From Podarcis bocagei (taxonomy: Eukaryota): a DNA stretch of 64,000 bases. The position numbers and the translations under genes are program-made. The notes below the pieces were generated by a model. That model was given only the letters and a program-made list of their open reading frames with translations, did not search any database and was not told the DNA's origin. Below, in pieces: positions 18,311-61,636 of this stretch (position 1 is the first letter of the stretch; every line of letters begins with the position of its first letter). The DNA lies in NCBI GenBank assembly GCA_964188305.1, contig OZ076887.1; one strand, given 5' to 3'.

Positions 18311-19310
18311 GAATCAAGATACACTATGTCCACAGCATTCCCCTGATCCATCAAACTTGTAACTCCATAAAAAAGAAGAAATTAGATTTGTTTGGCATGA
18401 CTTATTTTTAAAAAACCCATGCTGGGTCTTAGTAATCACAGCATCCTTTGCTAAGTGCTCACAGATGGACTGTTTAATTATTTGTTCTAGGACTTTTTCT
18501 GGTATCGTTGTCAAGCTCACCAGTCTTAGTTACCCATGTCTTCTCCACACACACTCTTTTTGAAGATGGGGACAACATTTCCCCGCCTCCAGGCTGCAGG
18601 GACATCACCTATTCTCCATTAATTCTCAAAGATTATAGACAGAGGCTCTGAGATTAAATCCTCAAGCTCCTTTAGTATCATTGGGAGCAGCTCATTAAGT
18701 GCATCAGGTTGTTTACATTCATTTAAAGTAGCTAGGTCTTCCCTCACCACCTCTTTTCCTATCTTGCACTGCAGTTCCCTTATTGCATTGTTTATTCTGT
18801 TCTCACCAAGTTCAGCACTGCTTTCCTTTTGGGTGATGCCTCCCACTTTTCTTTCTTGTTGGAATTGTATGCATTTGTGCCTTCAGTATTTCACCTTTAA
18901 GAAACTTCCATCCATTTTTGGATTCCCTTAGCTTTGAGTATTTCTGACCATAGGAGTTCACCCAGTAGTTCCTTAAGCTTTTTGAAACTGGTCTTCTTAA
19001 AAGTCCAGACTGCATGTGTGACTACACTTAGCTTTCCCTTGCCTCTGCATCACAAAACCCAAGAGGATATGATCACTTCGTCAATTAGATCTTCTCTGTT
19101 GGTAAAGGCCAAGTGCAAGATAGATGGCTCCTTTGTTGCTTCTTCCTTCTTCTGGGAAATGAAATTATCTGTGAGGCAAGGGAGGAATTTGGTGGACCTT
19201 ACATTCTTGGCAGAGTTTGAGTTCCAAAAGATGGGGCAGTTGAAGTCTCCCATGACTCCAATATCTCTCCTTTTAAAGTGTTTGGTAATCTGTTGTTTAG
19301 TATGTTGAAT
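18311..19310 (-). mobile_element. CR1 LINE ORF2 fragment (endonuclease to RT start), frameshifted and internally deleted
   Basis: Minus-strand peptides VMGDFNCP..WNSNSAK...FL.CL.DNFISQ...LAFTNREDLI (APE endonuclease), GWKFLKGEILKAQ, and SLTTIPEKVLEQIIKQ...QHGF.KNKSCQTNLIS (RT). Confidence 0.92.
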
Positions 19311-19687
19311 ATTTGGTAATTTGTCTGAATCTGCTCCACAGTTCCTACTAGGAAAGTGATGGGAAGAATACAAGGTTGTTACCAAAGCCTTCTTACCCAG
19401 TAGAAGTACTTCTTGCCCAGTAACAGCCCTTGTGCTGCCTGATGAAATTTCAGAAGTCCATCTACATTTTCAATCTTAAATTATCTTTGGTTGTAAGGGT
19501 GAGAGATGAGTTTCATTTTAAAAGAAATGTTACAGAAGAAAGTCATGGAGATATTTACTGTAGTGGTTAAAATGGAAGCTCTGAATTAGAAGACAACATT
19601 GGTCTGTTTCAGAGAGAGAGGCTCCTCCAGTAGCGTTGAGACTAAGTAGTATATGTTTACTTGGAGAGTATATCTATTCCTTATTGG

Positions 19688-19904
19688 CAAAATAAAAAAA
19701 TTCCTTCCAGTAGCACCTTAAAGACCAACTAAGTTAGTTCTTGGTATGAGCTTTTGTGTGCATGCACACTTCTTTGGTATCTGAAGAAGTGTGCATGCAC
19801 ACGAAAGCTCATACCAAGAACTAACTTAGTTGGTCTTTAAGGTGCTACTGGAAGGAATTTTTTTATTTTGACTATGGCAGACCAACACGGCTACCTATCT
19901 GTAA
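19688..19904 (+). mobile_element. Penelope-like element pseudo-LTR fragment in inverted (foldback) arrangement
   Basis: About 87-bp inverted arms (19688-19774 and 19784-19870). Flanked by a 14-bp direct repeat ctattccttattgg (19674-19687 and 19905-19918). Contains a hammerhead motif and the tail ...cagaccaacacggctacc typical of vertebrate Penelope pLTRs. Confidence 0.85.
19774..19817 (+). ncRNA. Minimal type I hammerhead ribozyme (Penelope-associated, short stem III)
   Basis: Stem I ttggtat (19774-80) pairs with ataccaa (19811-17). Core CUGAAGA at 19781-87, palindromic stem II gtgtgcatgcacac at 19789-802, GAAA at 19803-06, palindromic AGCU in place of stem III. Predicted cleavage after C19810. 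Confidence 0.8.
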
Positions 19905-20305
19905 CTATTCCTTATTGGGTTTTGGTAGGGGATTAGTGTAATTGAACTGTTCTCTTCTGAACTATAACATTTCCCCACTTCAGCCTTTCAGATACAAATG
20001 GATTTGAACTATAGATACTAATGTTGTGTTGCTTGTTGTGGTGCTAGGTAGTGATACACCACATCTGTGGAGAGTTGTAACATTCAAGTGAAATAATTAG
20101 TCTTTCTGTCATGTGTCGCTGAAAAGTGTATTTATGAAGATGATTTGGCTACTTTTATTTTTCTCCAACAGAGCACAACTATTTACTTCAGCAGTTGTTT
20201 ACTTTTATTCTTGTTCTAGTCTGTCTCTCTCGCCCCTAAATAAAATAAACCGGTACTAACTACCAACAGGAATATTAAGCTCTCCTTTTTCCCCTCTTAC
20301 TCCAG

Positions 20306-20346
20306 GTCCAGCAAGACTATGAATCTCTGTTCCAAATGCTTTGCTG
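20306..20346 (+). CDS. ZFAND3: ZFAND3 coding exon 2 (41 nt), second half of the N-terminal A20-type zinc finger: (G)SSKTMNLCSKCFA(D)
   Basis: Polypyrimidine tract and acceptor tttttcccctcttactccAG, donor GTAAGT at 20347. Translation SSKTMNLCSKCFA matches the recalled vertebrate ZFAND3 sequence CPCGFWGSSKTMNLCSKCFADFQKKQ. It ends in phase 1 and joins exon 3 in frame (G+AT=Asp). Confidence 0.96.
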
Positions 20347-21918
20347 GTAAGTGGAATGTAAAGGTTTGGTTTTGAGATCTCTCTCTCTCTCTCTCCTTTT
20401 TAAAATAGGCAATCTAAAGCACATAGTTGGCATCCCCCTTGGAGTTTATGTGTGGGTGTCTGTTTCTTAGTGTGTGTGCATGAAATCAGATTCTCCTCAC
20501 TCCGGTGCTTCATTTATTTGCTCAAGTTTGTTGAAACAATCTCCAGTGTGTATAAAAGCAAGAGCCTCTTGCGTACAGGCACCAATCAAGCCTTCACTCA
20601 GCAAAGTTTACAGAACTCTGGAATGCCCTTGAACTAGACAACTCCTGTCAAAGCTACTCACATTAAGAGTTCAGATTGCAGTTTTAGAATTACTAGTTCA
20701 ATAGAGCAGGCTTTAATTATGTTAATTGGAACTAAGAATTGTGTTTGTAGCTCCAGTACTGGATGGGAAAATATTTCTGTTCCACCTGTAAGTCTCTAGC
20801 AATAGAAATATATTTAACTATATTGTCTAATGGTGGAAAATAACTCAATTTCCAACCTACAGCTTTGTTGCCTATAATCTCTTGTCACTATATAAAGTAC
20901 TTTTTACCGTGTTTCATTTTGTCCTCTCATAACAGTAGTCACTATTATCCGCGTTTTACAAATGGAGGGCAAAGGCAAAGAGACAGACAGATATTTGCTC
21001 AGACGTGTGCAATACTGCAGTTGAGCAAGATTGTGAATTCTGTTCTTGTTGGTCTCATCCAGCCCTCTGACTTCTTTAAGTCTGACCTCTAATTTGGAGC
21101 AGAGATTCTTAGTTCCCATGTTCTGCAGCCCTGTAACATTATAATCATATGACCAATGGAAATAAACCATTATAGAATTCTGTGGATTGACATACATAAT
21201 GTAATATATCTACAAGCTAAGTCACTCTTGGCAAGTCCCATTATGTAAAGTGGGGGAAAGAGTGGTGTAATTTAAAGAGCGGTTGTGAGGATAAATGAAT
21301 GAGATGAGTATTGTAAAACCTTTGAGTACACAAAATGCAGTCTGCAATAGAAGAAAGTAGTAATAGTAGTACCACCAATTGAATGAACAAAGCCCTTTGT
21401 TGTGCCTTTGCTGCTTTTAAGTTACTAGGCTGTTGTAACAAAGTGCTCTTGAGATATTTAGCTTTTGCTGCTCTTGTTACAGTATCAGAATTACAAGGTA
21501 GCACTATATTAGCAGGAACACTTTTGTAGATAAGTCTATAGTTGAATTTGGTTGTGTAATTACAAGTGTTGATTTTTAGAATGTTGAAGTATTTCAGAGG
21601 CATGCACAAGATATCAGCTGTTTCTCAAAGAAAGAAAATATGTCAAAGAACCATGACAGATTAAATATTAGGGTCATTGTTTTGTTTAAAATAGGCAGGA
21701 GCAGCAGAGACCATAGATTTCTATTGAGATATAACCACAGTTTTTATCTCTGCAGGAGATAGGCAACTTGGAGTATGCAAAGAGGAACATTCTATAAAAC
21801 CCCATCACCCAATATTGGATATTTTGTAGCAGAAACCATAAGCCTTAAAAATTTAGCTTTGGAACTAAAGCAAATTTTATGAAATGCACTTAATATTTAT
21901 TACTATTTATTAAAATAC

Positions 21919-34758: not shown

Positions 34759-34945
34759 AGTTACAGATAGGTAGCCGTGTTGGTCTGCCATAGTCAAAAT
34801 AAATAAAAAAAATTCCTTCCAGTAGCACCTTAAAGACCAACTAAGTTAGTTCTTGGTATGAGCTTTCGTGTGCATGCACACTTCTTCAGATACACTGAAA
34901 CAGAAGTTGCCAGATCCTTCTATATAGTGAGAAGGTGGGGAGGGT
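34759..34945 (-). mobile_element. Penelope-like element pLTR, second copy of the same young family
   Basis: The reverse complement of 34759-34893 matches 19777-19906 except for the length of the T-rich tract. Confidence 0.85.
34856..34893 (-). ncRNA. Minimal hammerhead ribozyme motif, antisense to ZFAND3
   Basis: Minus strand reads gtat-CTGAAGA-a-gtgtgcatgcacac-GAAA-gctc-atac, with a 4-bp stem I. Confidence 0.72.
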
Positions 34946-36203
34946 GGGTAGTGGAAGCAGAGTAACTTTGATTGTGTGTTCGCGTGCCACAGTTTCCTTC
35001 TTTTTACCTTCAAGTTTTCTTAATGTAATGCATATGACAACACTCTTTGACTAGAAGAGGGTGGGGTTTTTTTTGGCTCTTTTGTTTATTTGCAACTTGA
35101 TCAGCCTTGCTGTTCAAACATACATTGGCACTGCCATGAAAGCTTGGATTCCACCTTGTTCCAGTAGTGAGATGCATGCCAGTCGTCTGCAACTAGATCT
35201 ATGGCTGGCATCCAAAGAACAACTTTAGGCATGCCTCATGTTTTATTTAAACAGCAGGTCCTTATGCCATAAAACAGATTTTTGAAACTCTCCTCTGGTT
35301 CAAAGTGAGTGCTACATGGCATGAAAGCCAAAAGCCCTTTAGACACACACAATGAGTTGTGCATTACATTACGAGTTGTGCATTACATTTCTTTGGACCT
35401 TGGCCTGTGTGAGTATTGTATAGTTACCATCCTATGTTATGTGCCTGTCATGGATGAGAACATTCAGCCCATGGCTGCACATCTGGGTGGTCTTCACATG
35501 AAGTGAATAGAAAGTTAGAAGTGAAGGGAAACCCACCCCAACCTTTATAAGTTGAAGTGAATCTAGACTTGCTACTGTCACCTACAAGCTGTAGCAAATA
35601 GGCTGATGGATGTTGACCTCAGGTCCAACTTAAGTGGCTAGATAGCAGGCCACTTGATCTATTCTTTGCAGATTTTGGAATGTCTTTTTAAATGTGTTTG
35701 TCACCTGATTAAAGAAACTTAGATGATTTATTACATGACCTCTTAATGTATTAAATTTGAAAAAAACACAATAGTTGAACAATGAGAAAAAATAAATATT
35801 TGTATTTAATTTGACTTTATTTAGAATATTCATTTCCTGCCTTTCAACAAAATTCTTAGGGTAGCTAACACTCAAATACATTAATAAAAATACAAAGAAG
35901 GCAAAATATCAAAAATACAGGATAAAAATGCAAATTCCTAGAAATGGAAGTAGCCTCAAATCCCATGACAAAGATAAACTTTAGGTGCATAATATATTTT
36001 AGGCATGGGGGAATGAAAAGCTTTTTAGCTGAATCCAAAAAGATATCAAGGAAGATGCTAGGTGACCCTCCTTGGAGAGGGCATTCCAACCATTAAAAAT
36101 GTTCTTCCCCAAAGCCACCTGCATTTCACTTGGCAAGGGGGCACATAGAGAAGAGCTCTCAAATTCTAGAAAGATGCATGTGGAGACAGACAATCCTTTA
36201 AGG

Positions 36204-48294: not shown

Positions 48295-48341
<47 letters not shown>
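48295..48341. repeat. (ATAG)n microsatellite
   Basis: Seen directly. Confidence 0.95.

Positions 48342-50029: not shown

Positions 50030-50083
<54 letters not shown>
50030..50083. repeat. (ATT)n microsatellite
   Basis: Seen directly; explains the poly-Ile ORF. Confidence 0.95.
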
Positions 50084-50084
<1 letters not shown>

Positions 50085-60650: not shown

Positions 60651-60801
60651 NNNNNNNNNNNNNNNNNNNNNNNNNNNNNNNNNNNNNNNNNNNNNNNNNN
60701 NNNNNNNNNNNNNNNNNNNNNNNNNNNNNNNNNNNNNNNNNNNNNNNNNNNNNNNNNNNNNNNNNNNNNNNNNNNNNNNNNNNNNNNNNNNNNNNNNNNN
60801 N
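60651..60801. other. Assembly gap
   Basis: Run of N. Confidence 0.99.
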
Positions 60802-60925
60802 NGAAACTTTTGCCTTTCTTTCCTCCCTCCCGTTAAATCCCTCTCCTGCATTCTTAGCCAGCTGCTTCTCTGCACACCCCTCTCATGTCCCTTCTTTGTT
60901 TTTCCTTCGCTCCCCACTTAAAATT

Positions 60926-61310
60926 TGGTTACAAAGCATAGATCCATATGGATCCTCAGGATCTTTGCATTGGGTCACCCCAAATTCACCATCAGATCAC
61001 ATAGCATGTCCATGGCTACAGCCTACACCAAAAAAACACACGCACCCACTATTGCCTGGGGCTGCAATGGTGCAAAAACGTGGTTACAAAGCATGGATCC
61101 ACAGGGATTCTCAGGATCTTTGCATTGGGTCACCCCAAATTCACCATCAGATCACATAGGCTGTCCATGGCTACAGCCTGCACCAAAAAAATCACGCACC
61201 CACTGTTGCCTGGGGCTGCAATGGTGCAAAAGCGTGGTTACAAAGCATGGATCCACAGGAATTCTCAGGATTTTTGCATTGGGTCACCCCAAATTCACCA
61301 TCAGATCACA
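60926..61310. repeat. About 155-bp tandem repeat, about 2.5 copies
   Basis: Units start tggttacaaagcat at 60926, 61081 and 61235 and are highly similar. Confidence 0.93.
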
Positions 61311-61636
61311 TGTCTGTGGCCACAGCATGAAGCACAAAAATGATACATTCACTGTTTCATTCAGAATGTTTTTTCCCTTGTTTTCCTCCTCTAAAAACGA
61401 TGTGTGTGTTATGGTCAGGTGCGTGTTATAGAGCAAAAAATACGGTAGCTAGCCTTTATTAAAAGTAGCTGTTTACAAAATTATACAACTTGCCCGTAGA
61501 AAGCAAGATGTTTCTGCTTGGAATAGCGCATACTGGGAGATGCTTATAAGTAGGTTATTTTCCTAATAATGCTGTATCTTAATAGTTGTCATATAAATGT
61601 TCCATGCAGTATCTCATCTCGCGGGGTGTGCTGTGT

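Follow-up and report, generated by a model that had tools for sequence, protein, structure and literature searches.

The hammerhead motif in intron 1 of the gene that we take to be ZFAND3 is very probably the standard minimal hammerhead ribozyme (min-HHR) of a very abundant Penelope-like element (PLE) family, carried in by a young palindromic insertion, masked by its own inverted arm and without a role in the gene. The analysis covers a window of 64 kb, by which we mean the whole stretch of DNA that was examined (64,000 nt), in which the motif, the insertion around it, a second copy of the same element and two coding segments of the host gene can be placed.

The host gene is represented in the window by two coding segments:

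20307-20349, + strand: exon 2 of the host gene, encoding the peptide SSKTMNLCSKCFA, with AG/GT borders
~63686, + strand: exon 3-like segment encoding the peptide DFQKKQPDDESTPSTSSSQS, in the same gene orientation as exon 2

Judged by these two peptides, the gene is presumably ZFAND3. The earlier note had placed the motif on the sense strand about 490 nt upstream of exon 2, and this position is correct, as exon 2 begins 490 nt downstream of the motif, which lies on the sense strand of the intron. Simple-sequence tracts are also present, with (CT)n at 20370-20395 just 3' of exon 2 and (ATAG)12 and (ATT)18 at 48295-48341 and 50030-50084. At 60926-61311, beside a run of N at 60651-60802, a 154-bp unit is repeated in 2.5 tandem copies (94% matches), and the overlapping long ORFs found there are probably repeat artefacts.

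A letter-by-letter reading of the window places a minimal type I hammerhead motif of 44 nt at 19774-19817 on the + strand, composed of the following parts, all but the predicted cut taken from reading the sequence:

19774-19780, + strand: 5' strand of helix I, uugguau
19781-19787, + strand: C3-A9 box, CUGAAGA
19788, + strand: unpaired A between A9 and G10.1
19789-19802, + strand: helix II, GUGUG-CAUG-CACAC, a 14-nt palindrome forming 5 bp and a CAUG loop
19803-19806, + strand: G12 A13 A14 A15.1 (GAAA)
19807-19809, + strand: G15.2 C16.2 U16.1 (GCU)
19810, + strand: C17, with the predicted cut at 19810/19811
19811-19817, + strand: 3' strand of helix I, auaccaa

Each nucleotide of the catalytic core (C3 U4 G5 A6 N7 G8 A9, G12 A13 A14, the pair A15.1-U16.1 and H17) was found by direct reading and again by a descriptor, and the claim of the earlier note that a minimal hammerhead with all core nucleotides occupies these positions holds letter by letter. 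The 7-bp stem I, the palindromic stem II and the tetramer AGCU in place of stem III, which it had also described, can all be read in the sequence. The pair that closes helix II, G10.1-C11.1, is G19789-C19802, and the palindrome gives 7 nominal pairs. The palindromic tetramer AGCU (19806-19809) stands where helix III would be. When folded on its own, the 44-mer adopts the hammerhead secondary structure (-12.7 kcal/mol, z -2.7), with helices I and II formed. Only these two helices are available within one molecule: the monomer has no helix III because an A-U pair would have to close a 2-nt GC "loop", so that only two copies can pair there.

The descriptor required the core boxes, a G-C pair closing helix II, palindromic 15.2/16.2, H17 and at least 4 bp in helix I, with an extra base allowed. 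In the 64-kb window it matched the site at 19774-19817 and the second element copy only, and it matched none of 300 composition-matched random windows. We conclude from the random windows that the motif is real and not a product of chance.

The hammerhead sits in a retroelement insertion of 217 bp at 19688-19904, or 231 bp with the duplication, which can be divided as follows:

19674-19687, no strand assigned: left copy of the target-site duplication, 14 bp, CTATTCCTTATTGG, from the direct repeat and the empty-site contig
19688-19774, - strand: left inverted arm, derived from the 3' part of the element in antisense and lacking the tail, from the inverted repeat, a 1-mismatch match, blastn (to 19774..19690) and alignment
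19775-19783, + strand: spacer of 9 nt between the arms, from the inverted-repeat search
19777-19870, + strand: right sense arm up to the tail-less 3' end, from blastn and alignment
19871-19904, + strand: optional 34-nt 3' "tail", on the right arm only, since the left arm stops at the mirror of 19870
19905-19918, no strand assigned: right copy of the target-site duplication, 14 bp, CTATTCCTTATTGG, from the direct repeat and the empty-site contig

The inverted repeat is 92 nt long, with arms at 19683-19774 and 19784-19875 that are 97% complementary and 9 nt apart. A three-piece alignment shows the right arm to be the element from just 5' of CUGAAGA to its 3' end (...CTATCTGTAA), and the left arm, in reverse complement, corresponds to the element between a point within the CUGAAGA box and a point 34 nt before the 3' end. 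The hammerhead of the left arm is incomplete; it lacks C3-G5 and has A at the G12 position (T at 19755 on the + strand, a CpG site). In the alignment, both arms carry a length variant of a T run that is absent from the second copy, and they differ at a single CpG over 86 shared positions, which argues that both arms come from a single event. The three bases at 19774-19776 deviate from the family sequence and provide extra helix I pairs at this locus only.

The following intron holds another copy of the element, in antisense orientation relative to the host gene:

34761-34947, - strand: second copy of the same element, 187 nt, without inverted arm, from the repeat scan, blastn, descriptor and alignment
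34893..34856, - strand: hammerhead of the second copy, with an identical core and a 4-bp helix I (GUAU/AUAC)
34960-34948 and 34760-34748, no strand assigned: 13-bp duplication flanking the second copy, CTGCTT[C/A]CACTAC, with one mismatch, read in the sequence

The right arm is 96% identical to this copy over 19777-19904 (blastn). No other sense-strand copy of the element was found by blastn in the 64-kb window, and no tandem head-to-tail copies are present there, the only arrangements being the head-to-head pair and the single copy. No PLE ORF, of the kind that codes for RT plus a GIY-YIG endonuclease in full-length elements, was found among the window ORFs of at least 130 aa.

Two public sets of DNA contigs and two public sets of bulk RNA raw reads were compared with 19300-20290 at a likeness of at least 90%. 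Identical 30-mers occur at three places in the window itself. In the two DNA runs, 8,141 and 11,600 contig pieces matched 19674-19911, and the summed word depth over this interval was ~10^6, compared with 22-30 for the unique sequence on either side. These genomes hold thousands of copies of the family, which is very abundant, and many of them are at least 99% alike. As one copy of a highly repeated family, the motif is not gene-specific. No further copies turned up when collections of metagenome and viral contigs were scanned for exact 25-mers, and a full-text search of papers with a 20-mer of the motif gave no match, so that the family was not found in the papers searched.

The site is empty in a related species, in which one contig of 228 nt joins 19673 to 19905 with a single 14-bp target; the insertion is therefore young and lineage-specific, and, because it is absent there, the motif has no conserved role. 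Genomic copies of the family have loose ends behind 19870/19871 and behind 19905-19907, which defines two 3' ends 34-35 nt apart, and each arm of the insertion at 19688-19904 uses a different one of the two. The upstream consensus of the family, obtained from overhangs before 19777, equals the sequence 5' of the second copy and gives the family a helix I of 4 bp. Judged from this consensus, the 7-bp helix I at our locus is a junction accident, made by the three junction bases. Within the motif, C17>U is the sole variant common in the family, and it conforms to the hammerhead rule.

The motif agrees closely with the min-HHRs of metazoan PLEs. Their published hallmarks are G10.1-C11.1, an enlarged helix II, a helix I of 4-5 bp, palindromic 15.2-16.2 and no real helix III (PMC4209133), and they occur in thousands of dispersed copies, mostly in truncated elements and sometimes as opposite-strand pairs, reptiles included (Cervera & de la Pena 2014, PMC4209133). 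Our motif has the type I topology, the full core, an unpaired nucleotide between A9 and G10.1, G10.1-C11.1, a helix II that exceeds the canonical 4 bp, a family helix I of 4 bp, and a palindromic AGCU (15.1-16.1) that pairs only between two copies, with no real helix III. It also shares the massive dispersed copy number and the opposite-strand pairs, and its earlier assignment to the Penelope-like minimal type I kind thus agrees with these hallmarks. It differs from the class in the 7-8 bp helix I of 19774-19817, obtained through the junction bases, and in being fully complementary to the adjoining arm. Cleavage by such min-HHRs was undetectable for the single motif and weak in dimeric constructs (PMC4209133). 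A passage in a review restates the dimer view, citing Lunse, Weinberg & Breaker (RNA Biol 14:1499) for dimer cleavage (PMC6765202).

A second comparison is with the Poseidon element of Anolis carolinensis (PAc). Its template RNA carries a hammerhead with CUGAGGA, one extra nucleotide, helix II, GAAA, palindromic ACGU and C17; cleavage by this ribozyme requires the protein of the element, and no RNA-seq ends were found at its site in vivo (PMC11167929). Reverse transcription begins at two internal start sites, whose spacing explains an optional genomic "tail" of 30-40 bp, and the enzyme cleaves and extends both DNA strands (PMC11167929). Our element resembles PAc in CUGANGA, the one extra nucleotide, helix II, GAAA, a palindromic tetramer and C17, with an ATG within helix/loop II. 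Its genomic copies likewise end at two sites 30-40 nt apart, 60-95 nt 3' of the ribozyme cut site, and RNA-seq ends at the ribozyme site are absent here too, in family-wide reads. Unlike PAc, it has no detectable sequence similarity to the printed template RNA in a comparison by eye, and no shared strings were found with the Poseidon_Ac consensus in the supplement of PMC11167929. The ATG in loop II opens a frame of only 9 codons and the copies seen are non-coding, unlike in PAc. The 3' tail, in which a PAc-like AC-rich stem-loop was sought, differs as well: it forms a weak hairpin of -4.1 kcal/mol, no better than shuffled sequences, and has no significant stem-loop.

Two other groups of hammerheads share some of these features. 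Animal non-LTR retrozymes (PMC7229834; bioRxiv 10.64898/2026.07.22.740005) are likewise short, non-coding, PLE-related units with type I hammerheads and have monomeric dispersed copies in introns. They are, however, defined by head-to-tail tandem repeats that give circular RNAs, and we rejected membership in this group since the window has no tandem arrangement. Retrozymes are also reported to be depleted from introns (bioRxiv 10.64898/2026.07.22.740005). The amniote intronic hammerheads HH9 and HH10 (RF02275, RF02277) resemble our motif in that they lie, in sense orientation, within introns of protein-coding genes. Unlike it, they are single-copy and deeply conserved, with stable helices and loop-loop contacts, and are active as monomers, whereas our motif is a repeat copy that is absent from a related species, has no helix III and matches no model.

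We propose that the hammerhead is carried in the 3'-terminal (pLTR/ORF-junction) region of a PLE family that was recently active in the lizard lineage. Two 5'-truncated copies of one template RNA would have been joined head to head with their 3' ends outward, reverse transcription having begun at the tail-less start site for one copy and at the tailed one for the other. Such a product would result if the PLE enzyme nicked and extended both DNA strands, as the in vitro work on Anolis Poseidon suggests. The locus carries the PLE insertion signature, namely an optional 3' tail of 30-40 bp (that is, two alternative 3' ends), the 14-bp and 13-bp duplications, truncated arms, a head-to-head layout and an empty site. 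The link to PLEs is thus argued from motif architecture, tail signature and insertion structure, in a window without a full-length PLE carrying RT/GIY-YIG. The family may be a non-autonomous derivative and not a truncated autonomous PLE, given the 9 codons opened by the ATG of loop II.

Folding in context gave a hairpin of ~95 bp (-163 kcal/mol, z -22) in which every ribozyme base pairs with the left arm. When the left arm was barred from pairing, the ribozyme-competent fold reached -24.6 kcal/mol versus -157.5 for the hairpin, a gap between the two states of ~130 kcal/mol. On this model the inverted copy almost certainly locks the ribozyme shut. Because the antisense arm would be transcribed first in the ZFAND3 pre-mRNA, there should be no co-transcriptional window with a free ribozyme: the sense hammerhead would zip into the ~95-bp hairpin as it emerges, and the thermodynamics suggest that the catalytic fold would never be adopted within it. 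The hairpin could be opened by helicases, by ADAR editing or by proteins that bind during transcription. As published for the class, cleavage by a free hammerhead would still depend on a second copy or on the PLE protein. The ribozyme would thus serve the life cycle of the transposon and not ZFAND3, and the only effect of the locus on the gene is most likely to add a long dsRNA hairpin to the intron.

RNA from the family is plentiful, with a depth over the element of ~600-700x in each of the two runs. These reads come from other copies, because no RNA reads were seen on the unique intron flanks in the two runs and 98-99% of the element reads continue into sequence unlike the locus at 19688-19904. 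No pile-up of read ends was found at 19810/19811 family-wide at ~600-700x, in standard libraries with reads from other copies and with a calling procedure that reports only ends reaching a fifth of the local depth. The lack of ends at the cut site in RNA-seq is thus a weak negative.

The same reads carry a pattern reminiscent of RNA editing. Strand-specific A>G changes occur in RNA only at 19828 (in a UAG context), 19839 and 19840, in 10-43% of the family sense reads of the two runs versus less than 0.1% of DNA depth in same-species contigs, with mirrored T>C changes at 19719 and 19730. The pattern is a candidate for ADAR A-to-I editing of dsRNA formed by family copies. Alternatively, a few highly expressed copies carrying G could produce it, a reading suggested by the A>C change at 19881, whose strand specificity in the element RNA reads is just as strong.

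We weighed three alternatives against the PLE insertion. It is extremely improbable that the string has no ribozyme ancestry and resembles a hammerhead by chance, as a piece of repetitive DNA. In favour of chance, the Rfam hammerhead families (Hammerhead_1 RF00163, Hammerhead_3, HH9, HH10 and Hammerhead_II) had no match at gathering score in the whole window and none at E<=10, whether searched with 301 nt or with the 51 nt in isolation; the Hammerhead_1 search proposed by the earlier note accordingly returned no family at either threshold. The descriptor, however, was absent from all 300 random windows yet present in both complete element copies, the motif shows, apart from its bare core, features by which PLE hammerheads are diagnosed, and the sole common family variant inside it, C17 to U, is one that the H17 rule permits. 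We therefore rejected a chance origin. Accepting the motif as a ribozyme, one may ask whether it is active in the ZFAND3 primary transcript, cutting intron 1 during transcription at ~490 nt upstream of exon 2, either by dimerising in trans with the RNA of other copies or with help from the PLE protein; we regard this as highly unlikely. In its favour, the core is intact at every nucleotide and has C17, helix I reaches an unusual length here (7-8 bp), family RNA is abundant (~600x) and hence trans partners exist, and the min-HHR of Anolis PAc does cleave in the presence of its own protein. Set against these points, the upstream arm can pair with the motif over its whole length, with the gap of ~130 kcal/mol; single min-HHRs had no detectable cleavage and dimers were weak (PMC4209133); the 64 kb hold no cis partner; read ends do not pile up family-wide at the cut site; and the 7-bp helix I is peculiar to the junction, the family having 4 bp. 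Cleavage of ZFAND3 intron 1 is thus unsupported, though not strictly disproved, given the hairpin, the need for a dimer without a cis partner, the empty site and the lack of read ends. The suggestion in the earlier note that the hammerhead cuts intron 1 or releases small RNAs likewise finds no support in view of the inverted-arm pairing, the missing cis partner and the empty site.

A third alternative takes the ~95-bp intronic hairpin itself as the relevant feature, a dsRNA substrate that would be edited by ADAR and/or diced into small RNAs, with a possible local influence on the processing of intron 1 or a role as a source of siRNA against the PLE family. The hairpin is near perfect, the A>G changes at 19828, 19839 and 19840 are confined to RNA and mirrored by T>C at 19719 and 19730, and a search of 301 nt with the Rfam miRNA-precursor models (E<=10) gave many matches. 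The latter merely reflect the hairpin, and all of their scores lie far below the gathering thresholds. The editing-like signal, moreover, comes from other family copies, there being no reads on the unique flanks of this locus, and it may stem from a few highly expressed copies carrying G, as the A>C at 19881 is just as strand-specific. We consider this alternative unlikely and retain the reading of a PLE ribozyme masked within its own insertion.

Little consequence for ZFAND3 is expected under the PLE reading, as the motif is transposon cargo in a recent insertion and is predicted to be locked in a hairpin. A broader and very doubtful idea is that palindromic, "self-masked" Penelope insertions are the form in which sense hammerheads are tolerated in introns: unmasked ones, able to cut pre-mRNAs, would be selected against, masked ones would survive in the form of dsRNA hairpins edited by ADAR, and under some conditions an active ribozyme could be freed in host transcripts such as ZFAND3 when the hairpin is edited or unwound. 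This idea is compatible with our data because of the editing-like signature in the family RNA and the reported depletion of retrozymes from introns. For "intact" minimal hammerheads in vertebrate introns in general, the repeat and folding context should be read before regulation is proposed. In the PLE reading, the locus is of modest value as an illustration of how a ribozyme can mask itself and offers a clean natural record of PLE integration, with two copies of one RNA placed head to head, each arm corresponding to one of the two sites at which reverse transcription was found in vitro to start in the Anolis element.
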